A stretch of DNA of 64,000 bases, taken from contig CM097885.1 of assembly GCA_044892525.1 (NCBI GenBank), forward strand, positions 184,636,001-184,700,000, read 5' to 3'. A model generated the notes under the pieces. It made no database searches and was not told the origin of the DNA. It was given only the letters and a program-made list of their open reading frames with translations. Shown here one piece after another: positions 12,601-39,775 of the stretch (within the stretch, counting starts at the first letter, position 1; every line of letters starts with the position of its first letter). Both the position numbers and the translations under genes were made by a program. The DNA is from Schmidtea polychroa (lineage: Eukaryota).

Positions 12601-15600
12601 TTAAGCTATATGCGAGAAATTCTTTATAAACTTTCTATAATAGCTTGCTAATCCTAAGAATTGCCTCACATCATCCGCATTCTTTGGAATTGGATACACT
12701 TCCACCTTTTTAATGTTGTCAGGATTTGTTTGTAGACCTCGTCTTGATATTATATGACCAACATACACCACTTCGGATTTTCCCCATTCACACTTCGATG
12801 GTTTTATTTTCAATTTTGCTCCTTTTAGTCGTTTAAATACTGCCTCAACATCATCGAGATGTTCATCAAAGCTATTTGAAAATATAATAATATCATCAAT
12901 ATAAACTAACGCGTGTTTTAAGCCTCTTAATACAAAATTCATACCTCTTTGAAATGTAGCCGGGGCTCCCGTCAAACCGAACGGTAGAACATTGAACTCA
13001 TATAACCCTTTGCTATCTGAAAAGGCTGTCTTCTTTCTATCCTCTTCCTTGACTTTAAATTGATTATACCCTTTATTCAAATCAATCACAGTAAAATATT
13101 GAGCTTCTCCCATCTGATCGAACATTTCCTGGGGTACAGGAATTGGATATGTATCTTTTCTTGTTACCTGGTTCAGTTTTCTGTAATCCACACAAAATCG
13201 TAAATCTCCGTCTTTTTTCTTTACAATTACAATGGACGACGAAAACGGTGATGAGCTATCTCTGATTATTCCAAAATCTTTCATTGCCTGAATTTGTCGA
13301 TCACTTTCGGTTTGATGAATATATGGTATTCGGTACGGTTTTATTTTCACCGGGGTTTCATCCAACAACGGAATTTCATGTTCAATTATATTTGTTAACC
13401 CCAAGTCATATTCGTGTCTCGCAAAAATATCCCGGTATCTCCTCAATAATTCTGTAAACTTTTGCCTTTGCTCTTCGGTCAGATCAGTACTTACTACTTC
13501 AGGTTCTTTATAAATTTTTACGTTTCTAGGAATCTTCCTTTCCGCTTCTATCAACATATTAGACAATTTGCCTAGTTTCGTCTTTGGTTTTAGCCGAATT
13601 GGCTTGTCACCATAATTAGCTATTCGCACTGGTAATAATTGATTTTCCACTTTCACAATTTCGTCACACATCGGGGTCTCGTATTTTTCTATTAACGTTT
13701 GATTCGGTTCAAATATAAATTCGTCATTGTCTACGCCAGCAGCGTTCGCATAATATATTATTTCTGTTTGAGGTGGGATGGTTACCGATTGACTGAGAAA
13801 TACTTGTCCTAAATCATGAATGACTTCGCCACTTTTTCCCACGATTAAATTTCCAGTTTTAAAATCCAGTGAGATTCCGTCTAACTGCTCCAGTACATCC
13901 ATTCCAATCAAACACAATACAGGGCTTTTTTCCATAATCTGTACGTTATGTGTAATCTTTCTGTCACCAATTAGAAGTACCACTTCTATTTCTCCAATTA
14001 TTCTCAATACGTTTTTAGACAGTGATCTGATTATGCTATTTGATGGTTTTATTTGCCTTTTCTCCTTTGCCGACAATATCTCTTCTGATATAATTGTATG
14101 ACTTGATCCTGAATCCACAACAGCCTCCACTCTCTTTTTATTTAGTTGGATTAATATTCGTGGTTGTTTGCCAATTTTTGCTAACGTCATCAATACATAA
14201 TTTCCGGGTAAACCTAATCTGTTTCGTCTTTCGATTTCGGCACTTGTTGGTTCGATTCTCTCACATTGTAAAGCAATATTTTCGACTGGTTTCATTTCCC
14301 TCAATTTTTCGACTGGATACGCTGGTAGTGGTCGGATAAACGATTTTGGTATACACAATCTAGAAAAAGTATCCTGATTATCATTATTGGACAGCGATTC
14401 TTTTAGCAGTTGATAGTTTTTCAATGTGTTACTTTGCATTCGTTCCTCCGAATACAACGGGGCGGATTCATTGATATTTTCGTCATCATTTTTGTCATCG
14501 TTAGAAGTAGTAGTCAAATCGATATAACTTACCTTTTTCTTTTTCATCAGTCGTGTTTTCAAAGTTTCCATCTCTTTATACTGGTGATGTGTGATAAAAA
14601 ATCTGGCTAGCAATGGAACGCATCCCATGACTAATTTCCAAGACAATCCCGTAATAGTATACAATCTGTGTGTTGACAACACCTGCGAGATTATTACTTT
14701 AATCACGATTCCAATTACGTAGATTCCGATTAATCCAGCACAAGCTTGACCAATAAACATGAACTTTCCCCATATCTTTTTCATCGTATTATATGTTGCA
14801 CTTTTGTAATGATCAGGTGTTAACAAGTAGTCGTAATTTGCTTTCCCAGTTCCACTCGGGAGAATAGTGTCCACCATTTCCATAATCACCCTTTCTTTTT
14901 TTGATGGAAATAATAAATTTCTCCGGGCCGCTTCAATATCATCACTTGAATACATCCCACTTTGCGTCATACTATCTAGCGATGTAAAATTAATCAAATA
15001 CTCTAATTTGGTCAACTCCAATTTCTCTGGAACTTTCACTCCTCTGTGATCGGGTAGTGCAATCCATGATTCAGACGTCAAGCGATACAGTGGAGCCAAT
15101 AATCTATTACATTGCAATACTTTAGGCTTCACGTCCTCTTCCAGTAGAATGCGTCTCACCGGTTCCATGAATCGCAATTTCCCGTTAAAATTCACTGGCA
15201 ATTCATTTGTACATTGATCGAATTTCATCAATTTGATAGGTACAGCTTTGCATTTATAGCTATACAACGCTTCGCCAAAAATTCGAGCAAATACTCCGTT
15301 CTCTGATATTAGCATTGGACCAACTAAATTCGGATTTGTAATAGCCATCGCCATTCTGTTTCGCAAAATTTCCTTATTTAACTTGCAATTATTTAATATA
15401 ATTTCTCGATACACACTTTCGACCGTATCTTGGCTAAAATGAAACAGATAATCAATTTTGTTATTGAAATAATTCGTTAGTTTAATTTCCTCTGAATATA
15501 ACTTCGTTTGAGCTTCCTCGACAATTCTTTTTGATACATAAATTCCTTTATAATTTGTTTCATATACTGTTTGTCCACATTTGGTATTTATACCCTTTCT

Positions 15601-16448
15601 GAGAAATCTCATCCCATCATTCGGGGATATTGCCATTAATACCGTTGGAATATCTTTCATTCGCAAAGGCGTAATTCTAATCGTTGTATTCATCACTGGA
15701 TTTAGAATTGTACTTTCTGGTCTCTCTTGAATTTGCTCTCCTGTTATCTCTTTGAAAGGCATCGATTTTAAGTGCGCTAAGTTACACTTTTTCACATTCA
15801 CGTCGTACACCAAAATTGATTCACCTGTATTACAACTGGTTTCTCTCATATTGCAAAATGGATGCGTTTGTAATTTTCCCGTGTCATCATCGAACGATCC
15901 GTCAAAATATTTCAACTTTGATTCGTACTCTTCTATAACAACGACTTTGTCAATAACCTGTTCACCCACCTTGTGCGATTCACCTTCGCAATCACCATTT
16001 GCTTTGATCACCCCTTTTATTGCAATTGTTTCGCGAATTTTGTGATTCACTTTCGCTTTTAACTTAATTTCCGCATTTATTTTTAATTCTCCTGTTTGAA
16101 ACGCTGCCAAACAGTTTTCGCGAGTTATCTCAATTACTCTAGGGATTGAATGCATTTTTATTAACGACGAATGACTCCATTTGCCACAATAAAATGTAAA
16201 TGTGGTCCTTTTTGCCGTACATTCTCTCACTTTTACTCGTCTAAATCCTGATTCTTGATAAACATGATATTTCATCTCAATTGCTCATTTAAATTTCTCG
16301 GATATGCATCCAGACATTCAGCTACATCTACTAGCGAGTATACTTTTCCCATTTCTGTTTGAGAACAATCATAAGCTACCAATGACGTTGTAGTATTGAT
16401 AAATCCTAATATTATGATAATAAACATAGATACCCATGGAACTATCAT
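12601..16448 (-). CDS. env: Envelope glycoprotein (chuvirus-like) fused in frame to protease and reverse transcriptase; one frameshift near 16295
   Basis: Signal peptide MIVPWVSMFIIIILGF then AYDC; Cys-rich ectodomain; TM region WGKFMFIG..GLIGIYVIGIVIKVII (~14760-14690); then, with no stop, VVDSGS protease (~14110) and YIDD RT (~12895). Confidence 0.85.
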
Positions 16449-16533
16449 TTTCCCCTTTTTTGGCTCATACACCCTTTTCAAATTTTCCGGTTTTAGTGTC
16501 AACTTTTTCCATCCACCATTACACTTGATCCAA

Positions 16534-17367
16534 CTATTTACATACTGCTTGTTCAATCCACTTTTCCGATTCATCAGATTCCAGCCAACTGTAGATACCA
16601 ATTTCGAAAACAATATAAGCAAGGACTGATAATACCACATCTTTACTCAAACCGTTTTTAATTAGCTCTTTGATTACTGTTTCATCGCAAAATATGTCTT
16701 CTTTCCTAATTTTTTTAAGTGCTACAGGAAGTCGTCCTTTCAGTTCTCTGGCAAGTTGTTGTATGAATTCATCGTTACATATATTCTTTTCATCCAGTGC
16801 ATATAATTCCGATGCCAACCCTTTAAGAATTAATTTTGTTAGCTTTACATCATTTAAGTCCAATTTTCCCACATCACTGGACTCCGTTTTATCTAAATCG
16901 TTTCGTTCCTCTTTATTGTTTAACTTGTATTTTCTTCGCTTCCGGTTGTTCGATTGACCACCGTCTTCTGTTTCTACAAAATTCGATTCGCATTTCATTC
17001 TCTCTGCAATTAACATCTCTTCAGTTACATTGCTAATCTCTTGATTTACTACATAAGTTTTATCTGCTCCATTACTAATATTCTCGTTTTGCTCTTCACC
17101 CAAATCTATTTGTTTTGATTCGCACTCGTCACACTCGGCTTCTCTTGGTTCCTCCGTTAATTTACTTTTGTACTTTTCACACTCGTTTTCGTTCGGTTCC
17201 TCAGATAATTCAGTTTTGATCACAGTATTGTTATCATCTTCTTTTTCGATAAAGGGCCAATGAGTTCCATCCTCAGAAATATTCATCTGTGTTGTGGCAT
17301 AGATATTATTTATGTAGTTCGGGCTGCCTCCGCAATTGACAAAATATTCGTCATCGTCTAATTCCAC
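16534..17367 (-). CDS. Acidic ORF, probably the frameshifted C-terminal continuation of gag
   Basis: Its start ELDDDEYFVNCGGSPNY resembles QLVDEEFLVDCGLIPGY of the upstream ubiquitin-like repeat, so the frame change looks like a lesion. Confidence 0.65.
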   Translation of the reverse strand: MELDDDEYFVNCGGSPNYINNIYATTQMNISEDGTHWPFIEKEDDNNTVIKTELSEEPNENECEKYKSKLTEEPREAECDECESKQIDLGEEQNENISNGADKTYVVNQEISNVTEEMLIAERMKCESNFVETEDGGQSNNRKRRKYKLNNKEERNDLDKTESSDVGKLDLNDVKLTKLILKGLASELYALDEKNICNDEFIQQLARELKGRLPVALKKIRKEDIFCDETVIKELIKNGLSKDVVLSVLAYIVFEIGIYSWLESDESEKWIEQAVCK

Positions 17368-18859
17368 TCGGTGCCCAATGTTTCTGCCACTTTCCGTCGT
17401 AATTTCGCCACCTTTATGCTCCAGTGCTCTTGTAGGTATTCTACTTTTCCATTCATATTTAGAGCTATTACTAAGGATTTTGAAGTATGATCTGATACTC
17501 GGTAACCATGACCTAGCATTCGTATTACTTCCTTCAATTTAACTTGATAATTTGTTGTTTTATGAATATAAGGTAAAATATTTTCAAATAATTGTTCTTT
17601 TGATTTTTGATCCATTTCTGAATTCATTATATAATCAAGGCATTTATTAATTTCATCTTCATCTCCGACATACAGCATATCTCGCAAATCCTGTAATTTT
17701 TCCTCCCAACTTTTACCAGCTAAATTTGAATAATTAATGACATTTAAAATTTTTACCTCGTTTTTATATCCAGGAATTAAACCACAATCGACCAAGAATT
17801 CCTCATCCACTAATTGACCAATTTGACGTTGTATGAATTTTATTTGTACTTCATTTCCTTGGTATTTTGACATAATAAGCTTTTTCAAATCTTTTATCTG
17901 TCCATCTGGTTTAATAAAAATTTGAAATTTTACGTCATCTCCATTGGTGGTTTCTACCAAAATATCAGGCAGACCTTTTGTTAATCTCAAAGCTTTTCCA
18001 AATATTTTCATCAGTTTGGCAATTTCATCATCTTGAAATTTATTGTAGACCTTTGAACATAAATTTAAAATATTTTTCAACTTTCTTTGGCTGAGTTGCA
18101 TTTGAGATAGTTCACTAATCCACTCTTTCAATTTTGGATTATTTGTTTCCATTCTCGTATACCATCTTTCTATTTTATTTATCAATAATATAGCTTTTTC
18201 ATTTGACAAGTCATTTTTCGCTTTATCTCCAAGACTTTCTTTTTCATCGGTTTCTTTTTTGTACACCATACAAGAATCAATTTCCTCCTCTGATTCGAAT
18301 TTTGACATTAGTTTGTTTAATTTCTGTCTCATTTCCCGGAATTCATTTTCCATTTTCTCTTTGAACTCGTCCTTTTGAGCATAGGCTACATTAGCGTTGG
18401 ATGATTCATCCTGAAATCTAATAGATTTCTTCAGTATTGGTCTGCTGAATCTTTCTGCTTTCTTTGGGCATGATCGAGCCATGTGGCCATAACCTTTGCA
18501 TGAATGACATTGAATTTGTCCATTTGTATTTACTTTATCTCGTTGCGGTGACGGAGATGTTGATGGTGATCGATTTTTAGAAAAGCAATTTCTGCTAATG
18601 TGACCCGTTTTCCCACATCGATAACATTCCAAGTTGCTCTTGTTTGGTTTGTTTTCCACAAATATTCTTTTAGGACTACTATTTCTGCCATATTTGAACC
18701 AACATTGGTTTGAATAATGTCCGATTTTTTTGCAGTGCTCGCATACGACACTATTTGATCTCTCGGTTAGCTGGCTACCAAAAGCTGCTTTGTTAGTTTC
18801 TATCTTGGTACCTAATCTGGGAGAACTGATTGTTTGGATTGGTCTCTTGGATTCCCATT
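17358..18859 (-). CDS. gag: Gag 3' portion: three CCHC knuckles, coiled coil, ubiquitin-like repeats
   Basis: CEHCKKIGHYSNQC, CYRCGKTGHISRNC, CHSCKGYGHMARSC; resumes right after the poly(T) end of the inserted element. Confidence 0.9.
17695..18859. repeat. 1165-bp direct repeat of gag, copy 1
   Basis: Identical to 32199-33363 except one base (18787 vs 33291) in a line-by-line comparison. Confidence 0.95.
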
Positions 18860-20546
18860 AAAAAAAAAAAAAAAAATCAAGTTTTATTTTATAATACATA
18901 TGAAGGCCCTATGGCCTAGAAGGGGAGAGTGATTCTCGCCCTTATGAGGTCTGCAGCATTTATCCTTTTTGGTCGGTGTATACCAGAGTTAAAAACTCCA
19001 GTATCAAAACGTTGGTGGTCTATTGGTTGGAGTTGTCTTAATTGGAGTAAATTGGGATATTATTGATCATTAGGTGTTAGAGGTTTGGCGTAGCATTGAA
19101 GTTGAAGAGTCATCAGTAGAGTCATCGTTTGTCGGAATTCAGTATCTGAATGTGGAGAAGTCATCATAAGAGGAGTCATTGTTTGTTTGTGTTGATTGGG
19201 CTTTGAGCATTGTGAGGATCAGTCATTTGCGAGGAGGACATAGACGTAATATCTAAATAAAAATTGTTGGGGCAGGAAGGCTCCATTGCGAGGTTTGTAG
19301 CGGTAATAGTTACTTATTATAGTATTTATTGAAAGGAGTTGATGAAGGTTGGGATATGTATATTAATAGCTAATCGTAGTATTGATTATAATAGTAATAT
19401 TATAGTACTAATCATTATAGTATTAATAAGAACAACTAAAAAGACCACCAAATAGGCAGAACCCCTACAAGGATTCTTACAATAACCCATTCGGTGATTA
19501 ACCGGTAGTACAGTAATTATAAATGATGATATGTATAATAATAATAATAATAATAATAAAAATAGAGATAATAATAGTGATAATCACAATAATAACAGCA
19601 TCCATAACAATAATAATAACAAAAGTAATAACAGCAATATGAATGATAATAAAAACAAACAGTAGTAACTATTAGAAGGAGCCATAAGGGGGTGAAAGTA
19701 AGACAAGGGGAGGTTGAGAAAAGTTATCATGATAGAAGTGGCAATGAGAATATTAAGAGAATAAAACCCAATAANNNNNNNNNNNNNNNNNNNNNNNNNN
19801 NNNNNNNNNNNNNNNNNNNNNNNNNNNNNNNNNNNNNNNNNNNNNNNNNNNNNNNNNNNNNNNNNNNNNNNNNNNNNNNNNNNNNNNNNNNNNNNNNNNN
19901 NNNNNNNNNNNNNNNNNNNNNNNNNNNNNNNNNNNNNNNNNNNNNNNNNNNNNNNNNNNNNNNNNNNNNNNNNNNNNNNNNNNNNNNNNNNNNNNNNNNN
20001 NNNNNNNNNNNNNNNNNNNNNNNNNNNNNNNNNNNNNNNNNNNNNNNNNNNNNNNNNNNNNNNNNNNNNNNNNNNNNNNNNNNNNNNNNNNNNNNNNNNN
20101 NNNNNNNNNNNNNNNNNNNNNNNNNNNNNNNNNNNNNNNNNNNNNNNTACCCAGCATATTATTATAGTATAAGAGTTTTGAGTTTTATGTTGATTTTAGG
20201 ATAGGAAAATCACAGGTGAGATGGAATTTAAGTTAGAGATTCAATAATGTTATTGTAATTTTATTTTAGAGGTATATATTAAATTATCATTAGTTTATTT
20301 ATTTAATAATAGAGCCATAATGTACAATGATGTTATCATATAAATACTTTTAATAATAAGTTTCTAATAGTTTATAATGAAGGATGTAAATATATCAACG
20401 CCCAAGGAGGATTTTCTATGATTAAAGTTAATTAGTTATTTAGTGTATTACTTAGGAGGATAGTTTTGTATAAGTATAATATAGCCATAATGGACAATAT
20501 AGATAGTAATCAATGCTTTGAGTACAAATATGTATAAATAATAATA

Positions 20547-22754
20547 TCAGTCTTTGAGGGTGTGCTCTCTTAAGATATGGTAGCTACTTATGACGGCAGC
20601 CGTGCAGGCTTTCCGAGCTAGACCAATAATTTCTTGTTTCGTGAGGCCAATTTTTTTAAGTACCTGGTTATTGTTGCTATCCCAGGATCCGAGAGTACCG
20701 ATTACTAGGGCTGAGATAGTGGTTTTGGTTTTGTGGACTTTCTCAATATCTATGGCTAGTTTGGCGTATTTAATATAGTTATTTTTAACAGCGGTTTTAA
20801 AGTTTTCCTTTTGTTCGTAGGGGACTTTTATGTCAAGTATATGAATGTTCTTATTTCTAGAGGATTTTATGAGAAGATCGGGTTTAAGAGTTGAATTTAC
20901 ACCCTCAGGTGAAATTTCAATGTCAAAGTGAAAGTTATAATTAGATAGACATTCGCAGACCGCTTCAAGGACACGGGAGTGCTTATTTCTGCGCGCATTA
21001 ATTTTTGCAGGGCAATGGTTAAATATGTGGGCCTGAGTTTCGGGGTGTGAGTTGCATTGCCGACAGAGAATAGATTTTTTATTTTTAAGTCGATGAGGTG
21101 TGAAATTTAGTTTTAGCAGGTTGTTGCGAGCCCTAACAAGAAAGAAGAATTGGGCGTCGCTGAGTATATCAGATTTCAGGAGGAAGTCAGAAGTGCTACT
21201 GTCAGTAATGGATTTGGCAATATGGCCCTGGTAAGTTAGGATCGTCCATTTTTCTGCGTGTATAAAACCAATGATGCAGTGCAGTTCAGAGGAGATGTTC
21301 TTCATGTTTTGTTCATTAAAGTAATTAATTCTATCTTTATATTTGATTTCAAGTTGATAAAGGTCTTCCATCAGCACAATTTTAGCTTGTATGCCATATT
21401 TCCTACGAAGCAGATCAACAGATTTTTTGAATTTCGAGAAGATAGAATGAGTTGGGAAGGCTTTAGAGATGTTGCCATTAATCCAGGATATTGCGGCTTC
21501 AAGGTTACCTTGGCCACGTGCTAAAGCAAGTTCTGAGAGGACAAGATTACGAAAGGTGAGGTCAGATGAGTTTAGAGCACGCGATAGGTGTACAATGCTT
21601 TGTATTACATATTCGTCTATTGCAGCGGTAAGTCCAAGTCCGCCCATTTTTATAGAGGCGTATATGAAGTTGTTGTTAAATTGTAAGAGTTTATCCCCCA
21701 GAGAGGTTTTTATCATTTTTCTAATCTTATTGTCAAAACCCTTTTGGGGGACACGATCTTTTATGAAGGTATCTTTATGAGAGTCTAGTATTTTATGGAG
21801 AATTTCACAATTACGGAAGGGAAAGATCAATCGAGAGTGTATGAATATCTTGAAGGCATTAATCTTCTGAGATGGGTGAAGATGTGAGTTTAGGATTTTT
21901 TCGGTATCGTTAATAGCGAGTTCAAGTCTTTCATCAATATTGTGCCTTTTCTTATAAGCGAAGTCTACTCCCAGATATTTGTAGAAGTTCGAGTCGTCTA
22001 CTTTAGGAATAATCTCCTTATATAGTTTAATTGGCTGGTGGTTATTACTGTCATTTAAGTGGAAATAACCAGATTTCGAGGGTTTAAATTTTAGATTGGC
22101 TAGGGAGGCGAGACGAATAGTTTCAAGGAGAGCAGAGGTGATTGATGGGTAAGAGTCTGAGATCAATACGATGTCATCCGCGTATGCTAAAATACCAATA
22201 TTCATGTCACCAAACATGAAAGGATGGGAGAAAAGGATATTTTTTATAATATAGTCAATAGAGAGGCAGAAAAGGGTCATGGAGAGTGGGCATCCTTGTT
22301 TCACTCCCTTCAGGATGGGAACTGAGGGCGATTTTTCACCTTCGCAGTCAAAGATGGTCATGACATTGTCGTACATATTGTTTATCAGTCTAATGGTGTT
22401 AGGGTGTAAACCTATTGTAGAAAGAGTATGCCAGATGAGATCATGTGGTAGGGAGCCGAAGGCATCAGTGATATCCAGCCAGACAATATGAAGGTCAGAT
22501 TTGTTTCTTATGGAGGCGTCCTTAATGAGTTGAAGGATAAGATTATGTTCAGCGCATCCATCGGGAGTGCCGATTGCTTTCCGGTTTTTCGAGATAAGGT
22601 TACCCTCTTTGATCCATCCAAGAAGTCTGTTATTAAGAAGTGAGGAGAAAACGCGGTATGCTGTATTCATGATGGAGATCGGTCTCCATGAACTGGCTTC
22701 ATGGCTTATCTCGTTCTTACCGGCTTTGAGGATGAGTTTTGTCCGAAAGGTTTT
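20547..22754 (-). CDS. RT plus restriction-like endonuclease of element A
   Basis: WRPISIM, GVKQGCPLS, AYADD, YKYLG, CRQC..ETQAHIFNHC, KPDL..LDIKVP..KY. Confidence 0.95.
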   Translation of the reverse strand, partial: KTFRTKLILKAGKNEISHEASSWRPISIMNTAYRVFSSLLNNRLLGWIKEGNLISKNRKAIGTPDGCAEHNLILQLIKDASIRNKSDLHIVWLDITDAFGSLPHDLIWHTLSTIGLHPNTIRLINNMYDNVMTIFDCEGEKSPSVPILKGVKQGCPLSMTLFCLSIDYIIKNILFSHPFMFGDMNIGILAYADDIVLISDSYPSITSALLETIRLASLANLKFKPSKSGYFHLNDSNNHQPIKLYKEIIPKVDDSNFYKYLGVDFAYKKRHNIDERLELAINDTEKILNSHLHPSQKINAFKIFIHSRLIFPFRNCEILHKILDSHKDTFIKDRVPQKGFDNKIRKMIKTSLGDKLLQFNNNFIYASIKMGGLGLTAAIDEYVIQSIVHLSRALNSSDLTFRNLVLSELALARGQGNLEAAISWINGNISKAFPTHSIFSKFKKSVDLLRRKYGIQAKIVLMEDLYQLEIKYKDRINYFNEQNMKNISSELHCIIGFIHAEKWTILTYQGHIAKSITDSSTSDFLLKSDILSDAQFFFLVRARNNLLKLNFTPHRLKNKKSILCRQCNSHPETQAHIFNHCPAKINARRNKHSRVLEAVCECLSNYNFHFDIEISPEGVNSTLKPDLLIKSSRNKNIHILDIKVPYEQKENFKTAVKNNYIKYAKLAIDIEKVHKTKTTISALVIGTLGSWDSNNNQVLKKIGLTKQEIIGLARKACTAAVISSYHILREHTLKD

Positions 22755-23389
22755 CTAAGTAGATGGACAGAGGGAGTTCCTTTGGATGTTATTACATATA
22801 GAGAGAAGAAGTTCAAAATCTGGTGATATCTTTTTCCAATTGGCAAGTGTGATAAGATCTAATCCTGGGGCGGTATTGTCAAGATTGGAGACAATGTATT
22901 TGATCTCATCAATATCAAAGGGAGTAGAAGAGTAGTTTTCTGAGAAGGAGCAAAGGAGGTTAATAGAAGGCGGATTTGAGGTGATCAATTCTCCTGCGAA
23001 GAGTTTGAGAATATTGGTCATAGTGGGTTTTTGGAAGGTAAATTCATTGTTCAAGATCTTAGATATCTCCTCCTTGGGGTCAAATTTGTATCTGTTCCTT
23101 TTAATAATTAATAATTCTTTGTCTAGTTTTTTTGTCTTATGAATGATGTCAGCTGGTTTTTTATTAATGTATTTTAGGGCGTTAATATTTTCATTTATCT
23201 TTACAATTTCACCAAGGACTGTATCACAGTCAGTTGTATCAGTATTTAAGTTAATTATGAGGCTATTGATAAATGGTCGATATTTTCGCACATCATCATT
23301 AGCCATTCTGTTATTAATAATTTTTTTAATTATACTTTTTATCTTATCAGTCATACTCTGGATGTTTGGGGAGGTAATCCTATCATGTT

Positions 23390-23811
23390 TCATCAAGCAT
23401 TCAATCATATGGCATACAAAGAAAGCTGATTCATAAGGAAAGCTGCATCTGGGGTATTCAAGATACTGAAGGTTGATGTCTAAGGGAGAGACAATTTTTT
23501 GTAAGTCAAGAATGGTTTCAAGGATATTATAAGCAAGTATTTGATGGGTAGAGGGACATTCATCAGTGATAGGGTCAATAAGAGTTGCGAGTTTACGACG
23601 CTTGTCAAGAAAGAAGAAGAACCAATTGTCCTTGGAGTGGCACATTGGCATTATGATCTCATTCCAGTCAGCAAATTCTTTAAAGGGAAAGGATTCGAAG
23701 AAGGTTTTGAAGTTGTGCTGAATGAGGGCGTTTCCAATATAGGGGTCAATGAAGATAGAAGTAGGTCTTATGGCGAAAGAGAAGATGAAGGCCTTGATTG
23801 TATGCTGTGAC
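23390..23811 (-). CDS. Ulp1/C48 peptidase-like domain of element A, catalytic residues substituted
   Basis: IMPMCHSKDNWFFFFLD..LIDP and YPRCSFPYESAFFVC align by eye to the Ulp1 motifs IP.H..HW..D..DS and PQQ.NG.DCG.FV. Confidence 0.6.
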
Positions 23812-26800
23812 CATCATGCAGCTTCTTTATCAATATTGTTTGAGAAAAGGATATTATCAGGTAAGTCCCTGGTAATAATTTCATTATTTAGCGGAGATAG
23901 GATTGCCTCTTGGGTATCCAGGATGTCTGTAAAAACATTATTTATATTATTATTAGTTACCTTAGAAGAATTGATGGGAGTAATAGAATTGTTGTTTTCA
24001 GGGGTGGGGTGATTATTCTCTATATGATTTTTTGTATCAGCGTAATTTATCCACTCTCCACAGAAACAGTATATTCTACGATTAATGTCGAATTTGAGGT
24101 TTTTATGATTTTTAAAGATATGGGACATAATAGTATCTAGGGGAGTATCAATGTCAAATGAGTCAAAGCATTTGTTGCAGTTTTTGTTCCAGAATTGGCA
24201 AGCAAGGAGATTTGAGGGTATAATTTGAAGTGAGACAATTTTTAAGAAGTCCTTACTTACACTACAATGGTGTTGGAACTGAGAGTTGTGGTTAAGAAGG
24301 TTCCTAAGTGTGATAAGATTAAGTGTGGACCTGCTTCCCTCTCCTTTGGGTCTACATTGCAGGCAGTCAATAAGTGAGTCGTATGTGATGGTCATGTTAT
24401 GGGTGTCTTGTGCATGTGAGATGATTTTGTCATGGTCTATAGCAGATATAGTGCCGCAAAAATCCGTGTGATGAACACCGCGGCATTGTAGTTTGCTTCT
24501 CGAGTCAGAAAAGTAGAGTATGTCGTCATTTAAGCTATTTGTTTTAAGGTCTTTAGGGATTTTGGACTTTCTTGGTTTGATTAGATCGTTCGGGGGGACA
24601 TAAAGAGTAATCTTTTTGCCTGCTACTTCCAGGCCTTTCTGGAAATCACTGTCAGTTTTCTGTTGTAGAGGTGTAAATGTGGATGTGTAAATCGATTCCC
24701 CTTTATCAGATGGTAAGGTGTCGTTTTTACGCTTAAGATTAGGCAAGTCAGAATTTGCAAGAGGTATTGCTGGAGAACTGTCTAGGTCTACTTTTTCAGC
24801 TAAGGAGCTGTTTTCAGCTACCCTTTCTTTATTAGAATTGAGTAAGGTTGAGGAGTCATCAAGAGGTGAAGGTCTAAGTGAGAGGTTATAAATTTTGGAG
24901 TCGTCATTAGATTCAGTCAGAAGAGGGTTGTTTTGAGGGAAAGATGTTGGAAGAGGATTGAGGCTATCAGTTAGAGATACATATTCAGTGTTGATACGAG
25001 TAGGTCGAGTATTAAGAAGAGGAGTAGTAGGTTCATTAGTGCTGGAGCTGCTTGATAAGATGACGTCATCGCAGTCAGAGTTAAAGAGATCGCTTGGGTA
25101 TTCAGGAGGTCTTTCTGAGGTGTTAATAACTTCCTCACCATCCGACACAGGGGACTCGATTGTGTCATCAAAGTAACAGCTATAGTGGGATGTGTCGATA
25201 CTGATCTTCGAGTAGGAGGAGTCACTGTCAGGGTCATAAGATAGTTCAGATAAACTAGAGCATGATGGAGTATCTTCTGGGGTGTAGGGAGAGGAGGTAT
25301 TATTCATGTTATTAGATTTAAGATATCTAACCTTTTTAAGGAGTTTTTCATTGGGTCTGATAACCTTAGGACAGGAAAGATTCGGAATAGGTTTGGAGAA
25401 ATGTGGTCTACTACATGTGATTTGATTACGGTAGATTGGTTTTGGCATTTTAGTATCAGGGAGAGTGGACAGACTATCGATAGTTGCAGGACTACAGGTA
25501 AAATGTTTTTAGGAAGAGGGTTAGGGTTGGTGCTGGGTTTACTGGGGTGCTTTGGTCTGCTATTATTTTCCTTAGATACTAGGGATTTACTTGTGGTATA
25601 ATCAGGGTCCACGGTGTCCATAAGAGAGGCATATCTATTATTTGCCATATTATTGATAGTAGTTTTAGCTGGGAGAGTGGGTGAAATCCCGGATGGTGCA
25701 ATGCCTCCAGGTGATGTAGACCTCTCAGTAATAATGATATTGATTTCATTTGAGTCAAGACAATTTGTATTATTTTTGGATAAGTTTTCTGTATCTACAT
25801 CAACTGCAGGGGTCGCCTTCTCAAATAATACTGAGGTCAATTGCCGGTAATTAATATATAGTATATAGAACAAATTTCTAATAATAAAGGAGTTTACTTT
25901 TTTATTGTTATTTTTTAATTGGGTATGGATATCTTTAAAGAGGTATTTATTAAGGTTTATTAAAATGGAATTATAGTGATTAATGAAATACCTATTATTG
26001 TGGTAGGGTATAAGCCTCAGATCAAAAGGTGGTTTGTCGCTATTGGACGGTTCAAGGATATCTATCAGTTTACGGTAATTGCTATTAAGGTCTTTGAAGA
26101 AAGAGATATAGGTAGTGGTTAGCATTTGTGGGTTTGAGGAGTTCATATGGAGAAATTGTTTTTGAATTTCCCTAATGAAATTGGTTCCAATTTCAATAAT
26201 GTTATTAAGGTATTCGGGGTCAGAGTTCTTATGAGAGGCTGTAGGGTAATCATTAGTATTAAAATTTTCACTGAAGGATACAGACTTGTGATGGGCGAGT
26301 CGGCCGTAGGCCGGCGAGCTGCGTGTTTTCTCGTGTTCCTTCGAGATAAAGTGTTGAAAAATGAGTGATATTTAAACAACGAGAAATCTTTGTTTAATAT
26401 CGATAATTTATTTAAATTAATAAAATTGGATATATTTATAATAATAACATTAACTAGCTCACTAGAAAATCCATTAAAAGGGACTTCTGTAGAGTTTTTA
26501 AAATCTAAAATTAATTTTTTAATAATATATTTAATTTTATTTTTAAAAAATTTATCATATTTATTGTTATTTTGGTAGACAGAAGTATATTTGTCATTAG
26601 ATTTATTATTCAAATTATAATTAACATTATTGGATTCATAGTTATCATTATAAGTATACGTATAATTATTATTAATCGGGTTTTCATTATTTAAGTTAAA
26701 TTCAAAGCTATTTAAATTACAATTAGAATTATTTAATCTATAGTCATTATCATAAATTAATTTGCTATTCTTATTATTTAGATTAGAGATATTGCCACTT

Positions 26801-27457
26801 AAATTACAATTAGGGTTATTTAATATATAGTTACAATTTAAATTATAATCATCACTAGTTAAATTGCTATTCTCATTAATTAAATTAAAATCGTTGCAAT
26901 TTACTTTACAATTTGAATAATTTAAGTTATAATCGCTATAGAAATTTTGATTATAATTACCTTTATTTCTATTATTTAGAATGTGAATCCTACGAGCTGG
27001 GCAGAAGGATTTCCACGAGGCATTGAATAGGTCTTTGGGTGTTTCGTCTGTAGTCCTAGCTTCTTTATTTCCATTATTAAGAGTGTGAATCCTACGATCA
27101 GGGCATAAGGATTTCCACGAGGCTTTAGATAGGTCTTTGGATGTTTCGTCCGTAGTCTCAGCTTCACTGTAAAGAGGTCTGGCAGGATGGGCATTACTGT
27201 TCAGGTCCGAGGAAGCATTCGCATATTTGTTCGAGATCTTCCTAGCAGGACAAAGTCTGCTGTTCATCATTTCACGAGTATTCGGTGTCATGGTTTTAGG
27301 AGCGTTTCTTCCAAGTCCGTCAAGAGGAGCTGTAGTAGGATTATGGATTCCAGTTCTAGAAGGGAAATTAGATTTTGTAACATAAGGGTTTTTCTTATCA
27401 GTATCTCCAGGATTGGAGCTTCTTCCATCCATAGCTGCTTCATTGGTGTAGACGGCC

Positions 27458-30400
27458 AAAAAAAAAAAAAAAAAAAATCAAATTTTATTTTATTCAAATG
27501 TAAATAGCTGGCCACTTGGCCTAAGGAGAGATTGATTCTCATCCTTTGGATTCTGAGGCTTTTATTTCAATATTCTTGGGATGTCGGCATATGGATGCCC
27601 GCATCATTCACAAATGTGGTTTCAGGTGGATATGTTTTGAAATCTAAAGTCCTTGATCTATATGTCCTTGAAATTTAGGTTGTAGTAGAGATAAACTGAT
27701 TGTAAATAAGGTTATGCTTTGGTGTACATATATAGATATAGATATAGATATTCTGTAGCAGGTCTCAGGTGATGATAACGGGTTTGTAATAGAGTGGAGT
27801 AATTGGACCGGACTGTGGTGAGATTCTCAGGACTTTCATTTATCGCAAATCTTCTATTGTGGTTGGAGAGATCAGGTAGTAGTTGAGATCATTGTAGGAT
27901 GTAGTAGTTGAACCGGAGTGCGAAGAGATTCTCTGGATCTTTTTATATTGTATGGCAAATCTTCTTTGTGGTGGGAGAGATCGGGTATCTGTTGAGGTCA
28001 TGGGTTCCGAGGTTTGGTCGCAGGTTGTTCAATGATGTGGTAGATATTTGTGGATGTCAGCCATTTGCAGTGAGCATAGGATCGGTGGGGATATTAGTGT
28101 GTTCCGGAATTTGATCATAGGAGTGATTCAGTTGTGATTGGGTTACTAAAATGTAAAATGTTGGAGCAGGAAGGCTCCCTTGCGAGGTTTATAGCGATAA
28201 TAGCTACTTATTATAGTATACATTAAAAGGAGGTGGTGGAGGTTGGGGTAATAATAGTAATATTGGAATAATAGGAATAATAGTAATAATAGTAGCAATA
28301 ATAGTAGATCATAGTATAGTAATAATGATTATAATATTGATATGGACAACTAGAAAGATCACCAAATAGGCAGAACCCCTACAAGGGTTCCTACATTAAC
28401 CCATTCGGTGATTGACAATTACAATTAGTACCGTAGTGATAAATAATGATATATATAGTAATNNNNNNNNNNNNNNNNNNNNNNNNNNNNNNNNNNNNNN
28501 NNNNNNNNNNNNNNNNNNNNNNNNNNNNNNNNNNNNNNNNNNNNNNNNNNNNNNNNNNNNNNNNNNNNNNNNNNNNNNNNNNNNNNNNNNNNNNNNNNNN
28601 NNNNNNNNNNNNNNNNNNNNNNNNNNNNNNNNNNNNNNNNNNNNNNNNNNNNNNNNNNNNNNNNNNNNNNNNNNNNNNNNNNNNNNNNNNNNNNNNNNNN
28701 NNNNNNNNNNNNNNNNNNNNNNNNNNNNNNNNNNNNNNNNNNNNNNNNNNNNNNNNNNNNNNNNNNNNNNNNNNNNNNNNNNNNNNNNNNNNNNNNNNNN
28801 NNNNNNNNNNNNNNNNNNNNNNNNNNNNNNNNNNNNNNNNNNNNNNNNNNNNNNNNNNNNNNNNNNNNNNNNNNNNNNNNNNNNNNNNNNNNNNNNNNNN
28901 NNNNNNNNNNNNNNNNNNNNNNNNNNNNNGTAATAGGTAGTTAGTTATTTATTTATTAGTTGGCTATAGTAGGTTAGTTATTTGTAATTATTTAGTTATA
29001 GGTTTTGTAAGGTTAATCCAAAGGAGGTTAGGCTGCTTTAGTTGTGGATATAGTTATATAGTATTGTTTAGTAGTTTTACAAGACAGTTTATTTATGAGC
29101 TATTTATAGTATAACGATAATGTATAATATATAATATGGTAATGCTTTGTTTAGGTAGGTATATATAATAGTAAAGTATTAATCCTTAAGGGTATGTTCT
29201 CTAAGTATGTGGTAGCTACTCACCACTGCAGCTGTGCAGGCTTTCTGTGACAGTCCTTTAATTTCAGATTTAGAGAGTCCTATTTTTCTAAGTATCTGGT
29301 CATTGTTAGAGTCCCAGGAGCCAAGGGTGCCAATTACAAGTGCGGAGATGGTGGTTTTGACTTTATGTGCCTTTTCAATTTGAATAGCCAGGTTGGCATA
29401 TTTTGCATAGTTATCATTGGTCACCCTTTTAAAGTTTTCTCTCTGTTCATAGGGGACTTTGATATCTAGGATGTGGTTATTGTTGTTCCTCATGGATCTT
29501 ATAATGAGGTCGGGTTTGAGCAGAGTGGGTATGCCAAGAGGAGTTATTTCGATGTCTAAGTAGAAGTTGAGGTTAAGGAGGAATTCACTAACGGCATCTA
29601 AGACCCGGGAGTGTTTGTTTCTACGCGCGTTTATCTTTGCTGGACAGTGGTTAAAGATATGCGCTTGGGTTTCAGGGTGTGAGTTACATTGTCTACATTG
29701 TATAGATTTTTTGGATTTAAGTCTATGGGGCGTAAAGTTTAGTTCTAGAAGGTTGTTACGTGCTCTGATAAGGAAGAAGAATTGGGCATCGGTCAGAATA
29801 TCGGTTTTTATGAGGTAGTCAGCTGTGGTGCTATTACAAATTGATTTTGCAATATGGCCTTGGTACGTTAGGAGGGCCCATTTTTCAGTGTGTATGAGGC
29901 TAATGATGGAGTGAATTTCAGAGGAGATAGTGAGAATGTGAGGTATCTATACTAATTTTGGAGTGTTTCGAGGAGGAAGTGTCTATTTCAGAGTCATTGG
30001 GGATTGATGAGCTGTAGGTTGATGAGTTGTCCTCATCGATATTGGAAGAGACTGAATCGTACTTTGTGTTGAGAACTTTTGTTCTCTGTACTTTCTTGAG
30101 CAAGTTTTCATTAGGGCGAATTTCTTTTGGAGCAAATGGGTTTGGAATTGGTTTTGAGTAGTGTGGTCTATGCGAGGTGTTGATGTTAGTCTTTTTGCTA
30201 GTGGACTGAGTGTCAGGGTTGTAGCCTAGTTTTCTCGGTTGTCTTGGAAAATTGACAGATGTCTTAGGAGGTTCATTAATTTCATGACTATTGGTTTCAA
30301 TAAGGGCAGCACATCTATTATTTATTAGTCTATTATTCAGGTTTTTATTCTTCTTATGGGGGTAGGTGCTTTCAGGGAGAGTGGATACCATATCAGTGCT

Positions 30401-32198
30401 CAGGATGCATTCAGGGGGTTCATTTCTGACAACGTTCACATTGGTGTCATAAGTAATCTTTGAATTATCAAGCGTCCTTTCAACGTTGATATTTAGTGGG
30501 ATCTTGGGTAGTTCCCCCCGATTACTGTTATAAGCTTTATTTATTATATTATTATTAGATAAAATATTGGCAAATAGATATGGGGTAAATTGTTTGTAAT
30601 TTATTGATAAAATGTAAAAAAAATTTTTAACAATATAAAAATTATTATTTCTATTATTATTTTTTAAATGACAGTGTAAGTCCTTGAATAGGTTTCTAAT
30701 TAAATTTTTTAGGATGTCATATGAATTTTGATTTATTTTGGTTATCGTATTATATAGGTTGGGTATTAAGTTAATATTGAATGGCGCAGTTTCTTTAGTA
30801 TTATAGGTATTTAATATATCTATTAAAATGAGGTAATTCGTGTTGAGGTCAATAAAAATGGATCTATATATTTGCGGGAGCACTCTTATATTATCTTGTT
30901 TAAGGAATATGAATTGTTTAGTCAATTCTCTGAAAAAATTATCGCCTATATTTCCTAGGTATGTAAAGTTGACCTGAGTCCTGGTATTTGCTGGGTTTAG
31001 AAGGGGTTTATCGATGGGATGTGAAATAGGTTTAGAGCTAAGGCTGGTATTCTTATTAAGGTTTAAGATTTGGGCATACTTCATAGTTGGGACACGGTTG
31101 GGTGTACGTTTATATGGGTCAATAGTTGGTCTAGTATTAATATTCTCTGGGAGTCGGCCTCGGGCCGACGAGCTGCGTAGCGGCATACTTTCGTCCTCCG
31201 AAGGAGGACGAAAAATTTTTTTGCTTTCATAGTTTCTGGAATAATTTTGGTCTTTTTTAAACAAATCTTTTTTAATTAAATTATCGCCATTTTTAAATTT
31301 ATTTAATTTGGTATTTATATTAATATTATTTAAGTTACTTTTTTCATTTAAAAAATATGATTTTATGTTTACGGATTTATTTTTAAGGTTTTTCTTTACT
31401 GGGTTTTTATAATTATTATTCTTAATTTTATTTTGATTAAAAATTTTATCTTTATTAAATTTCACGTGTTTATTTCTATTATAATTTAAATAATTATGTT
31501 TATCAAATAGTTCGTTTTCATAAAATGGGGATTTATTTCTGCTTTTATTTCTATTATCATATACATTTAAATAGTTAATTCTTTTATTGGTATTATTTTC
31601 ATTAAATAAAGAGTTATAATTTTCATTAAAATTATCTTTACTATATATTACATTTTCATTAGTTCTTTTATTATTATGAATTTCATTTAAGTAATCATTA
31701 TTATAATGCATTATATTTTCATTAATTCTATTATTAGTATGAGATTCACTTAAATAATTATTTCTATTATACATTACATTACTATTGAAAATAAAGTTAG
31801 AATTGTAAAGATAATTCTGATCATTAGTTACCTTCTTTTCCCATGTGTCCTTTATTCGAAATAAGGTGTTTATGAATTTATTGTGTTCATTTTGGTTGAT
31901 AGGCATGCCTCTGCATTGGGGCATAACCAAGCAGTAGGCGTAATTGAATGCTTTCAGACTGGCCTGTTGAATCTTGTGTCCAATTCGGTTCCAGTATTCT
32001 AGTAGTGTATCGTCAGTTAGATATATCTTTCCTGAAAGATAGTTAACGAGTTGATTAAAAATAGTGAACTCATGGATTTCTGCCCAGTGCTATTAATGAT
32101 ATATAGCAGTATTTCTGCTAAGCACTGGGTAACGGCGGGTGACAAGTAATTGAAAGGATTTAGAGTTTGAAGATGCATTATAAAAATTTTCCTTCCTA
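27458..32198 (-). mobile_element. RLE-type non-LTR retrotransposon B, sister family of A, internally deleted (no RT)
   Basis: ORF1-like part (29929-32090) homologous to A is joined directly to ISSEIH..CCHC-RLE (29179-29928); 3' UTR shares conserved islands with A; T20 tail. Confidence 0.9.
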
Positions 32199-34006
32199 AA
32201 TTTTTCCTCCCAACTTTTACCAGCTAAATTTGAATAATTAATGACATTTAAAATTTTTACCTCGTTTTTATATCCAGGAATTAAACCACAATCGACCAAG
32301 AATTCCTCATCCACTAATTGACCAATTTGACGTTGTATGAATTTTATTTGTACTTCATTTCCTTGGTATTTTGACATAATAAGCTTTTTCAAATCTTTTA
32401 TCTGTCCATCTGGTTTAATAAAAATTTGAAATTTTACGTCATCTCCATTGGTGGTTTCTACCAAAATATCAGGCAGACCTTTTGTTAATCTCAAAGCTTT
32501 TCCAAATATTTTCATCAGTTTGGCAATTTCATCATCTTGAAATTTATTGTAGACCTTTGAACATAAATTTAAAATATTTTTCAACTTTCTTTGGCTGAGT
32601 TGCATTTGAGATAGTTCACTAATCCACTCTTTCAATTTTGGATTATTTGTTTCCATTCTCGTATACCATCTTTCTATTTTATTTATCAATAATATAGCTT
32701 TTTCATTTGACAAGTCATTTTTCGCTTTATCTCCAAGACTTTCTTTTTCATCGGTTTCTTTTTTGTACACCATACAAGAATCAATTTCCTCCTCTGATTC
32801 GAATTTTGACATTAGTTTGTTTAATTTCTGTCTCATTTCCCGGAATTCATTTTCCATTTTCTCTTTGAACTCGTCCTTTTGAGCATAGGCTACATTAGCG
32901 TTGGATGATTCATCCTGAAATCTAATAGATTTCTTCAGTATTGGTCTGCTGAATCTTTCTGCTTTCTTTGGGCATGATCGAGCCATGTGGCCATAACCTT
33001 TGCATGAATGACATTGAATTTGTCCATTTGTATTTACTTTATCTCGTTGCGGTGACGGAGATGTTGATGGTGATCGATTTTTAGAAAAGCAATTTCTGCT
33101 AATGTGACCCGTTTTCCCACATCGATAACATTCCAAGTTGCTCTTGTTTGGTTTGTTTTCCACAAATATTCTTTTAGGACTACTATTTCTGCCATATTTG
33201 AACCAACATTGGTTTGAATAATGTCCGATTTTTTTGCAGTGCTCGCATACGACACTATTTGATCTCTCGGTTAGCTGGCTACCAAAAGCTACTTTGTTAG
33301 TTTCTATCTTGGTACCTAATCTGGGAGAACTGATTGTTTGGATTGGTCTCTTGGATTCCCATTGATTTCTGACAGGTGTTATCGACCTTTCTCTCCTTTC
33401 AATATTTGCTGCGAATGCTTCAGATTTTCTGGTGCTTTTTAAATTCAGTTCTATTTTCATTGCTTTCTTCACAAGTTCATCAAAATTTGCAAAATCTACA
33501 TAACATAATGCCTTCTTTATTTCGGGATGAGCTCCAGTTATGAATTGATCTTGAAGCAGTTCTTTAACCTGCTTCACCATATCAACTTGCTCAGGCTTTG
33601 CTTCAAAGGCTTTATCTGCTAAAGTATTTAAATGGTATGCAAACTCACTTACCGATTCCGTTGGATTTTGAACTCTGTTATAAAATCTCTGTCGCATTAT
33701 CCTTTTGATATCTCCACCTACCAATTTCGTTGCCATTGCATCCTTCAATTTGGCCCAATCATTTCCAACTGTCCTTTTGTCCACTTGTTGCCAAGCTTCT
33801 CTTGCGACTCCCTTTAAATATAACGGAAATCTTTGTACCATTATCGCTTGTGACCATCCATAAGCTGAGGCATACATATAATAATCTCCCATGAAGTCTG
33901 CAAACTCAACCGGATCTCCCCCATACTGATTCACCGGTAATTTTTGACAAATTGCAAAATCAATCATCTCTCTATTGAGAGGCATAGCAGCATTATCATT
34001 TGCCAT
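32199..34006 (-). CDS. gag: Gag 5' portion (capsid-like domain, CCHC knuckles, first ubiquitin-like repeat); 32199-33363 is direct-repeat copy 2
   Basis: ATG at 34006 (MANDNAAM); YGGDPVEF..F, FPLYLKGVAREAW, RVQNPTESVSEFAYHL, DQFITG capsid-type motifs. Confidence 0.92.
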
Positions 34007-34196
34007 TTGTGTTTGTTTCAAACTTCTGAGGTTATATCGATTCACTTTGATCTAAACTTCAAAAAAAAACAAATTAAATTTACTTGTCCTCAGCCAAACT
34101 TTCTATTTTTACTCAACTTCAAATTTTCAATACTTCTCTGTCAATTTTATATCGTGTCGTAAATATCTATTTTCAACAGTCTTTCACCAACGTTAG

Positions 34197-34214
34197 ATCA
34201 CGTCGGGCTCACCA
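34197..34214 (-). promoter_or_regulatory. Primer binding site, tRNA-Trp
   Basis: TGGTGAGCCCGACGTGAT, 8 nt inside the 5' LTR; one mismatch to the canonical tRNA-Trp PBS TGGTGACCCCGACGTGAT. Confidence 0.85.
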
Positions 34215-34222
34215 AAAATATA

Positions 34223-35382
34223 TGTTGGGTTTTATAATAACAAAAGATTGATCGTTGGTTACTCTGACTCCTCGTGTTCAGACAAATCAATAAACTCCGA
34301 TTTCCCAACGTATATTTGTTATTACACTTTACAATTCTCAATCACAACAAATTTCACACAATAATTTAATAATCAAACTTTTTATCTATTCGATCAAGCC
34401 CCACCTCGGAAGTCTCGACCCTGTGCGATCTTGAAAGTAACTATCACCTTTTAATTCCTTTATTCGACTCCTTGTCTTTGATTCGATTTGTTTGACTGTT
34501 TTGAATTCAATTCACTCAACTCTTTGATTCACCCTTTAATTTCCTTGATCTGACTTCTTTGATTCCTTAATTTTCCACGTCTCTTCAATTTCACCCCTTC
34601 TAACAATCTCCAAAACCTATTGTCGATTTCTTCTTCCCTACCTAAGGCTAACGCCAAATTTTCTGAATTTGGAGTCTCCTTATATACTCCAATAATCATT
34701 TTGATTACCAGCGGCTTTCTTTGATATTATTATAAAATAACTGTAATTAATCACTTCTACCGTTCCTTCATGTTATTTCCGATCTTTTTTTATTTACCCT
34801 CACTTATCCTGTTGATTCCATAATAGTTCTCTAAAAGTTAAACTGTTTATTTTTCTCGATTGCCGCGCTCGGTTGTTAAGATAATGTCTCTCCAAAAGTC
34901 GTTTTGTTTGTTTTGATAATCGTTCTCCAACGTTCAGTTTGTTTATTTTCCCTAATAACCGTGCTCGAGGTTTCTTCATCTCTCGGGTTCTCCATTGGCT
35001 CGGACTTCCCATTAGCCCGGGTTTTCCATTAGCCAATTAATTAATGATTTCTGTTTTAACCTTTTTACCTATTTTCAACCCTTTCAAGACATTTTCTGAT
35101 AATTTCTTGCTCGCTATCTTCTTCGCCAATCCCTGATCTACACCTATTCCGTTTTCCAGCTTCGATTTTGATAACTTTTCAATTTATTCCAATTTCTCCG
35201 ATTTGCACTTTTTCTCCATTCCGTATCTGCTTACACCTTTTTCTCGTTCTGTTTTCCTTATGTCTTTCTTTAACTTCAATTCTCTGCTTGATTGCGATTC
35301 TCTTTCGTTCCACTTCAATGTTCTTTTGAATCAAATTAATTCTAATTTAATTTAAGATAATTTTAATTTGACAACCTTAACA
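34223..35382 (-). repeat. 5' LTR (1160 bp)
   Basis: TG..CA termini, followed by the PBS on the minus strand, TAAC TSD at 35383-35386. Confidence 0.95.
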
Positions 35383-35739
35383 TAACTCATTTTTTACTCT
35401 CTCTATTTTAACTTCGCAATTGATTAATTGATTGATTGATTGTACCATGCAAATTTTGCGACGGCAAATTAACCCGCTTCCTGTGATCAGATTAAGCTGA
35501 AAGTTTGCAAGTAGATTCATTGTAGGGAATATAAGATCAAAATATAAGATCGATCTGACCACGGAAAGTGGGTTAATTTTAAATAATATTGATTTGTCAA
35601 AGCTAGTGTCATTTTCTTATTTCAATATAAATTCTTATCTATTCATTGACTTCGGATTAAAGAGATAACGTAATTATATCTAAAATATTTTGAAATTAAG
35701 AAAGTGAAATATAAAGAGTTTCAAAACCATGTTTTTCAT

Positions 35740-38700: not shown

Positions 38701-38816
38701 TGAACATCACTGGGATGTTCACTTTTTGTAAACTTACCCATATTTAATAAACTGTCGACATCAATTGTTAGTGTCATTGTATATATATTCTTATTGTTCT
38801 TACAATTGTATATATA

Positions 38817-39737: not shown

Positions 39738-39742
<5 letters not shown>
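38817..39742 (-). mobile_element. Non-autonomous hAT with KIAA1586-like transposase N-terminus (mirror copy to 53747)
   Basis: TIR-like ends (C)AGTGGTGTGCTGG / CCAGCACCCCCTG, TATATATA on both sides; coding relic [29 protein letters not shown]. Confidence 0.75.

Positions 39743-39774
<32 letters not shown>

Positions 39775-39775
<1 letters not shown>

Follow-up and report, generated by a model that had tools for sequence, protein, structure and literature searches.

A chuvirus-like glycoprotein precedes Pol, and shares its reading frame, in a decayed Ty3/Gypsy element of Schmidtea polychroa

The stretch of Schmidtea polychroa DNA analyzed here (assembly GCA_044892525.1, contig CM097885.1, positions 184,636,001 to 184,700,000; 64,000 nucleotides, hereafter the window) contains a retroelement in which a viral glycoprotein gene lies between gag and pol and continues into pol without leaving the reading frame. 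Translations of open reading frames (ORFs) and Pfam matches across the 64-kb window place all described features of the element on the minus strand (Table 1). The two long terminal repeats (LTRs) are 99.2% identical, with 9 mismatches and no gaps over 1160 nt. We assign the element to Ty3/Gypsy on the strength of its LTRs and gag, together with a polypurine tract and a putative primer-binding site. It is a Metaviridae-type LTR retroelement in an AT-rich animal genome, and a preliminary description of this DNA, made from its letters, had already called it a Gypsy element. No tRNA genes were found in the window, and no primer tRNA is assignable to the putative primer-binding site.

The gene of interest, env-pol, encodes a glycoprotein followed by a protease (PR), a reverse transcriptase (RT), an RNase H (RH) and an integrase (IN). 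It includes an open frame of 1224 codons, which is offset from the short preceding piece that bears an AYDC motif. This frame holds the glycoprotein family PF24664 (residues 1 to ~600), RVP (703-799) and RVT_1 (1018-1176); RNase H and integrase lie downstream in the same frame as RT. Protease, RT and integrase carry their D[ST]G, YxDD and HHCC motifs, and the PR-RT-RH-IN order is that of Ty3/gypsy, with an RNase H of Ty3/gypsy type and an H2C2 integrase. Membership of BEL/Pao was rejected on the Ty3/gypsy type of Pol; no BEL/Pao-type families occur among the Pfam matches of Pol. The preliminary description had listed a signal peptide, AYDC, a Cys-rich ectodomain and a transmembrane segment running stop-free into protease and RT, with RH-IN in the same frame, and each of these parts was recovered from translations, Pfam or motifs. 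It had also called the copy inactive, and so it is: env-pol is broken by one frameshift and one in-frame stop.

Table 1. Features of the env-pol element in the window, in the element's own 5' to 3' order. LTR, long terminal repeat; LINE, long interspersed nuclear element; pLDDT, predicted local distance difference test.
Feature	Positions	Strand	Evidence and remarks
GTTA flank	35383..35386	-	same 4 bases at 7188-7191, outside the other LTR
5' LTR	34223..35382	-	1160 nt, TG...CA ends, directly read
Putative primer-binding site	34196..34214	-	starts TGG; 8 nt past 5' LTR
gag, N-terminal and central part (5' fragment)	32199..34045	-	capsid-like domain and CCHC
Intervening block splitting the element	18860..32198	-	a pair of diverged LINE-like copies, with two N runs
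gag, C-terminal part (3' fragment)	17358..18859	-	two CCHC knuckles, zf-CCHC E=2e-10
Region from gag stop to signal-peptide Met	16449..17357	-	acidic 277-codon open frame and conserved pre-signal segment
env-pol gene (signal peptide, glycoprotein, anchor, linker, PR, RT, RH, IN)	10501..16448	-	translations, Pfam
Signal-peptide-like segment	16374..16448	-	ends directly before AYDC; hydropathy 2.14
Glycoprotein domain including its own tail, class III fold	14476..16373	-	PF24664 Monjiviricetes_fusion, E=6e-78
Transmembrane anchor	14689..14745	-	residues 511-529 of the long frame; hydropathy 2.51
Variable tether, glycoprotein tail to protease	14245..14529	-	pLDDT ~30, low conservation and occupancy
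Retropepsin (protease)	13879..14169	-	DSG active site; RVP E=1.5e-6
Reverse transcriptase	12748..13224	-	YIDD motif; RVT_1 E=1.4e-33
RNase H, Ty3/Gypsy type	12172..12561	-	RT_RNaseH E=8e-37, RT_RNaseH_2 E=4e-34
Integrase, H2C2 zinc finger and catalytic core	11335..11853	-	Integrase_H2C2 E=1.4e-19, rve E=4e-11
Polypurine tract	8354..8364	-	just upstream of 3' LTR, read from sequence
3' LTR	7192..8351	-	1160 nt, TG...CA ends, directly read

The glycoprotein is laid out as a signal peptide, a Cys-rich ectodomain and a single C-terminal anchor; the ectodomain piece contains 12 Cys, 8 of which are invariant across the relatives introduced below. Its main match to PF24664 scores 262.8 bits against a curated cut-off of 27, and the AYDC-bearing N-terminal piece matches positions 6-46 of the 653 in the model at E=0.001 (17.5 bits, cut-off 27). 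A word-based search with the glycoprotein alone returned only 3 unnamed matches and no named viral glycoprotein, and a sequence search of the PDB gave nothing meaningful, matches coming from the fold search alone. For the latter, the ectodomain piece from a single frame was modeled with AlphaFold2 from 10 aligned natural sequences. The model has a mean pLDDT of 64.7, with ~80-90 over the first 280 residues and a poor C-terminal half. Foldseek placed herpesvirus gB first in the PDB (E=2e-10, probability 1.0) and also matched baculovirus GP64; among the predicted viral structures of BFVD, the top four matches are glycoproteins of chu-like viruses (E=1.6e-29 to 5.7e-28), at a TM-score (query) of ~0.5 and 17-20% identity. 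The preliminary description had named the chuvirus family and expected a chuvirus or class III gB-like fold from Foldseek, and both kinds of structure were found. The profile match and the predicted fold support a glycoprotein of the chuvirus/Monjiviricetes family with the fold of a class III fusogen; the sequence searches did not reveal close kinship to any named virus.

In the window, 166 residues separate the anchor from the protease. The PF24664 model reaches residue 600, so the first ~70 of them are still tail of the glycoprotein itself; the linker of ~170 amino acids proposed earlier is thus right as a distance, but less than its whole length is linker in the strict sense. The remaining variable tether is predicted to be disordered. 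The 1224-codon frame crosses the junction of anchor and protease without a break and well away from the N runs, and the linker has 0 stops in frame as against 12 in each other frame. A stop-free linker arose in 0 of 5000 shuffles and is not due to chance. The position of the glycoprotein before Pol, and its in-frame fusion to it, therefore stand as first described.

Searches with the window's own frame (query trimmed to 1195 aa), HMMER among the methods, recovered relatives that are 33-44% identical to it and lie on independent contigs; their architectures were read from domain scans and by mapping with the window's own domains, and contigs L001-L005 were examined. In 16 of the 21 Env-bearing relatives collected, Env runs uninterrupted into PR or RT within one predicted protein. 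Five predicted proteins carry the complete order Env-PR-RT-RH-IN (P0121, P0122, P0125, P0260, P0284), and two extend it to Gag-Env-PR-RT-RH-IN (P0128, 2146 aa; P0286, 3735 aa). Partial proteins continue from Env into PR (P0001, P0002, P0003, P0124, P0126, P0129, P0165/P0262 and P0282; in P0002, Gag precedes Env), and P0010 joins Gag to Env. HMMER aligned ectodomain, anchor, linker and protease as a single continuous alignment for P0126, P0129 and P0165. The spacing from anchor to protease varies from 90 to 626 residues among the relatives, and this stretch has 0 in-frame stops in the window and 4 relatives, with 6-67 stops in the other frames. Similarity to the relatives extends ~50 codons upstream of the signal-peptide Met of the window; a search of the relatives' contigs for LTR pairs gave none. 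These open frames indicate that Env-Pol continuity is conserved in distant relatives and is not a one-off. Moreover, Gag shares the Env frame in P0128, P0286, P0002 and P0165, so the family looks like one with a Gag-Env-Pol polyprotein and not a Gag-independent Env-Pol. The preliminary description had Pol packaged through the envelope instead of through Gag-Pol; its Env-Pol fusion is retained here, but the in-frame Gag of these four relatives does not fit a simple replacement of one route by the other.

Some relatives have features of their own. Those from metagenome sample ERZ25039515 are giant, with two to four protease-like domains and ankyrin repeats (P0121, P0124, P0260; contigs L003, L004), and have long post-integrase tails with further hydrophobic segments; downstream ORFs carry RNase_T exonuclease and RING domains (L003 9547-11622; L004 21702-22841 and 22895-23398). 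In the window, the integrase frame ends in ~50 residues (10501-10650, minus) that include a hydrophobic, signal-like segment, and the 2.1 kb between integrase and 3' LTR have no detectable coding similarity to the long tails of the relatives. NCBI lists P0122 (HBK71150.1), a complete Env-PR-RT-RH-IN fusion, as a hypothetical protein from a metagenome bin of Flavobacteriaceae; its contig is nearly certain to be eukaryotic or viral and wrongly binned.

The position of Pol relative to the membrane was assessed from hydropathy and structural models. In every relative, the glycoprotein domain is immediately preceded by a hydrophobic segment, and a single strong anchor lies ~560 residues further on. 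This signal-like segment is internal in most of them, being preceded by 130 to ~1340 residues. The anchor is conserved in the relatives and is predicted to be a helix (pLDDT 80-87). In a model spanning anchor to protease, the anchor is a confident helix, a second hydrophobic stretch beyond it forms a 9-residue helix broken by a proline, and a long helix follows; then come ~95 residues of very low confidence and a confidently folded protease (pLDDT 83-91). With no more than 9 helical residues in the second stretch, and a disordered tether and a folded protease after it, the model favors a single-pass protein with a cytosolic Pol on a flexible tether. The earlier proposal that Pol forms the cytoplasmic tail of a membrane protein thus gains from the modeling but falls short of proof.

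The window copy is split as well as decayed. It comprises two fragments, 7192-18859 and 32199-35382, which overlap by a 1165-nt direct duplicate with 1 mismatch (17695-18859 and 32199-33363); the duplicate flanks the ~13-kb intervening block. The 5' gag fragment is a 650-codon frame with Retrotrans_gag (E=1.3e-9) and zf-CCHC (E=2.9e-12) domains, and is homologous to the N-terminal parts of P0010, P0002, P0128 and P0286. The intervening block contains an RVT_1 domain (20547-22670) and two internal repeats (19260-19542 with 28155-28462, and 20475-21296 with 29105-29928). The GTTA on the two outer flanks may be a 4-bp target-site duplication, provided that both fragments stem from a single insertion; a chance match would occur about 1 time in 256, and the 2 bases before both LTRs match too. 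Its presence on both sides hints, thinly, at one insertion later split. The duplicate and the 13-kb block may likewise have arisen when a single insertion was split, leaving a very long target duplication, or they may be an artefact of assembly. The reading frame changes twice on the way from gag to the signal peptide, which may reflect separate overlapping ORFs, breaks or a programmed shift. The acidic 277-codon ORF in this interval has no Pfam match and no counterpart among the relatives. No canonical slippery heptamer is visible at the gag end of the window copy, so we do not claim programmed frameshifting.

The preliminary description held that no element with this layout had been described. 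This does not stand: Chary and Hayashi (eLife 2026, preprint 2023; PMC13524379) have reported Ty3/gypsy elements ordered GAG-ENV-POL, with a gB-type ENV, from Nematoda, Bryozoa and Platyhelminthes. The gag-env-pol layout is therefore already known, and the window holds a decayed further example. Like it, the published elements have a Pol of Ty3/gypsy type and, within a single LTR pair, an env that sits between gag and pol on their strand and is of the gB-like class III kind, in keeping with the Foldseek matches of the window to gB and GP64. The same paper cites nematode endogenous retroviruses with env before pol, this env having an RNA virus as its source (Sacco et al. 2022, J Gen Virol 103:1739, as cited in PMC13524379), and reports chuvirus-like glycoproteins adjoining gypsy POL in several arthropod groups. 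It describes ectodomains flanked "by two transmembrane domains", an arrangement that fits an internal signal sequence. GAG, ENV and POL are treated there as three ORFs, and frame continuity, a polyprotein and topology are not discussed; what differs here is the continuity of Env and Pol in one frame, shown for the window element and its relatives. In the literature examined, where Sacco et al. 2022 is represented by the paper citing it, we found no description of a conserved translational Env-Pol fusion or of Pol tethered to the cytosolic tail of Env.

Other captured envelopes offer partial parallels. Atlas virus is a belpaovirus with a single stop-free Gag-Pol-Env polyprotein (PMC9094657), and, with Env included, this polyprotein needs internal membrane-targeting signals. 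Atlas virus and nematode belpaoviruses thus resemble relatives P0128 and P0286, whose single stop-free polyprotein is ordered Gag-Env-Pol; in the window copy, the gag and env frames differ and env-pol is broken. Atlas virus differs further in belonging to the Belpaoviridae and in pairing its Gag-Pol-Env order with a phlebovirus-like GN-GC pair and a class II fusogen, whereas the window has a Ty3/gypsy backbone and a class III fusogen; moreover, the Atlas Env is C-terminal, so Pol is not its cytoplasmic tail. The Anakin elements of mosquitoes are BEL/Pao elements that carry a chuvirus glycoprotein (PMC7642597). They are alike in the kind of glycoprotein captured by an LTR retroelement, but their backbone is BEL/Pao, whereas the Pol domains and nearest relatives of the window are of Ty3/gypsy type; the env-like genes known from BEL/Pao are found downstream of its polyprotein, whereas the glycoprotein of the window lies upstream of the protease and in frame with it. 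Insect errantiviruses (gypsy, ZAM, Idefix) also combine a Ty3/gypsy backbone with a captured viral fusogen, but are ordered gag-pol-env, with a separate F-type env ORF (class I-like, related to baculovirus F) that is expressed from spliced RNA. Glycoproteins of Jingchuvirales and Monjiviricetes (PF24664) themselves share the signal peptide, ectodomain, anchor and tail, with the profile match at E=6e-78; they differ in sequence (17-20% identity in structural alignments), and the tail in the window runs on into a retroelement Pol. Dezordi et al. 2023 (PMC10084718) found many chuvirus-like glycoproteins flanked by Gypsy fragments, and capture was not recognized.

Taken together, we think it probable that this Ty3/Gypsy family, with its class III fusogen between gag and pol, is expressed as an Env-Pol polyprotein (Gag-Env-Pol in some lineages) with Pol on the cytosolic side. 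Genomic RNA would be translated into the Env-Pol polyprotein, or in some lineages Gag-Env-Pol, and an internal signal sequence would direct the nascent chain to the endoplasmic reticulum (ER). Internal signal sequences serve in ER targeting in the polyproteins of flaviviruses and alphaviruses. The ectodomain would pass into the lumen until the single anchor halted transfer, and the glycoprotein tail, the ~100-residue disordered tether and Pol would remain in the cytosol. The parts would next be cut from each other by signal peptidase and by the protease that the element encodes, and Pol would arrive where particles assemble while still held to the membrane at the envelope protein. More tentatively, and with somewhat less than even confidence, the native product may be one ER-threaded polyprotein in which cytosolic Gag (where in frame) and Pol flank a lumenal class III fusogen, Pol being a cleavable tail of Env and not a Gag-Pol fusion.

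Several observations weigh against polyprotein expression with a cytosolic Pol. Translation across the anchor-protease junction is inferred from open frames alone; most relatives come from a single metagenome sample, ERZ25039515; the frames of gag, spacer ORF and env all differ in the window, so the gag-to-env coupling of its own family is unreadable from one copy; and the mean pLDDT of the models is moderate (64.7 and 57.0). In addition, charge counts around the anchor are not decisive for topology, one relative departs from the common frame, and a second hydrophobic stretch follows the anchor. The departing relative is L005, in which Env and protease occupy separate adjacent frames. Its frames would fit separate production of the two proteins: a spliced subgenomic RNA would yield Env, an RNA from which env has been spliced out would yield Gag-Pol, and the shared frame would give no functionally important Env-Pol protein. 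The Env of retroviruses and errantiviruses comes from spliced RNA, and the 1:1:1 ratio of Gag, Env and Pol that a single polyprotein entails would be unusual. Separate expression, however, leaves unexplained why 90-626 codons stay stop-free and in frame in 16 diverged proteins. P0128 and P0286 are stop-free from Gag to IN, and Atlas virus is a precedent for an Env-containing retroelement polyprotein; we therefore consider separate expression unlikely.

The second stretch bears on where Pol would lie if the polyprotein is made. It is the weaker of the two, 25-40 residues past the anchor, and is conserved with invariant G, W and P; its 19-residue hydropathy is 1.0-1.7 across the proteins and 1.71 in P0165. 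Anchor and stretch could form a hairpin, so that Pol starts in the lumen, or the stretch could be re-entrant, with a topology that varies between lineages. Yet the modeled helix of 9 residues, broken by proline, is too short to span the membrane, and enclosure in the lumen would keep protease, RT and integrase from both Gag and RNA. The stretch also falls within the PF24664 model and is thus part of the viral glycoprotein's own tail, which counts against a hairpin, and we regard these topologies as quite improbable. Least credible of all is a one-off chimera, in which a chuvirus-derived endogenous fragment, or an assembly artefact, sits inside an ordinary Gypsy copy. The surrounding assembly does contain N runs and the internal 1165-nt duplication, and Gypsy-flanked fragments of chuvirus glycoproteins are common in arthropod genomes (PMC10084718), but the same order and frame continuity recur in the 33-44% identical relatives on independent contigs, and the junction lies within the uninterrupted 1224-codon frame, distant from the N runs. 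A nested or chimeric origin was rejected as contradicted by the relatives.

The rest of the window is rich in other repeats. The two N runs of the intervening block (19775-20147 and 28463-28929) sit at matching points of the two diverged LINE-like copies, which are 73-88% identical, each run lying after the first and before the second of the internal repeats given above. The LINE-like elements (20547-27459 and 29918-31930, minus) consist of a chain of long ORFs, of which only the last has a Pfam match (RVT_1); those without one are four of 280-544 aa and one of 670 aa. A large inverted duplication (37806-43949 against 54758-48476; 95.7-100% identical in pieces parted by N runs) encloses a hAT-like ORF (DUF4371, 45727-47730), and each arm carries a piggyBac-type transposase fragment (40060-40599 and 51839-52378) and tandem repeats with a 38-nt period. 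An ORF of 862 aa at 58451-61039 (minus) matches DNA_pol_B_2, the protein-primed type B DNA polymerase (E=4e-31), and weakly Endonuclease_7, and looks like a Polinton/Maverick-like element. An intronless 464-aa ORF of the MFS (major facilitator superfamily)/sugar-transporter type lies at 55459-56853 (minus); its best named relatives, only 28% identical, are SVOP-like proteins of barnacles and a sea slug, and the host is an animal lineage that named proteins cover sparsely. A tandem satellite with units of ~143-145 nt (63109-64000) reaches the end of the window.

Overall, the position of env before pol in this family is a conserved translational fusion, and so goes beyond a mere change of gene order. 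It raises the question of what sets the ratio of Gag, Env and Pol in elements of this kind and by what route Pol enters particles. Some of the Gypsy-flanked, chuvirus-like glycoprotein fragments of earlier surveys (PMC10084718) may be pieces of such elements, and public databases carry such fused proteins mislabelled as bacterial hypothetical proteins, P0122 being an example. If the proposed expression is correct, a reverse-transcribing element would be using a polyprotein strategy in the style of flaviviruses, with Pol reaching the budding site as a cleavable tail of Env.

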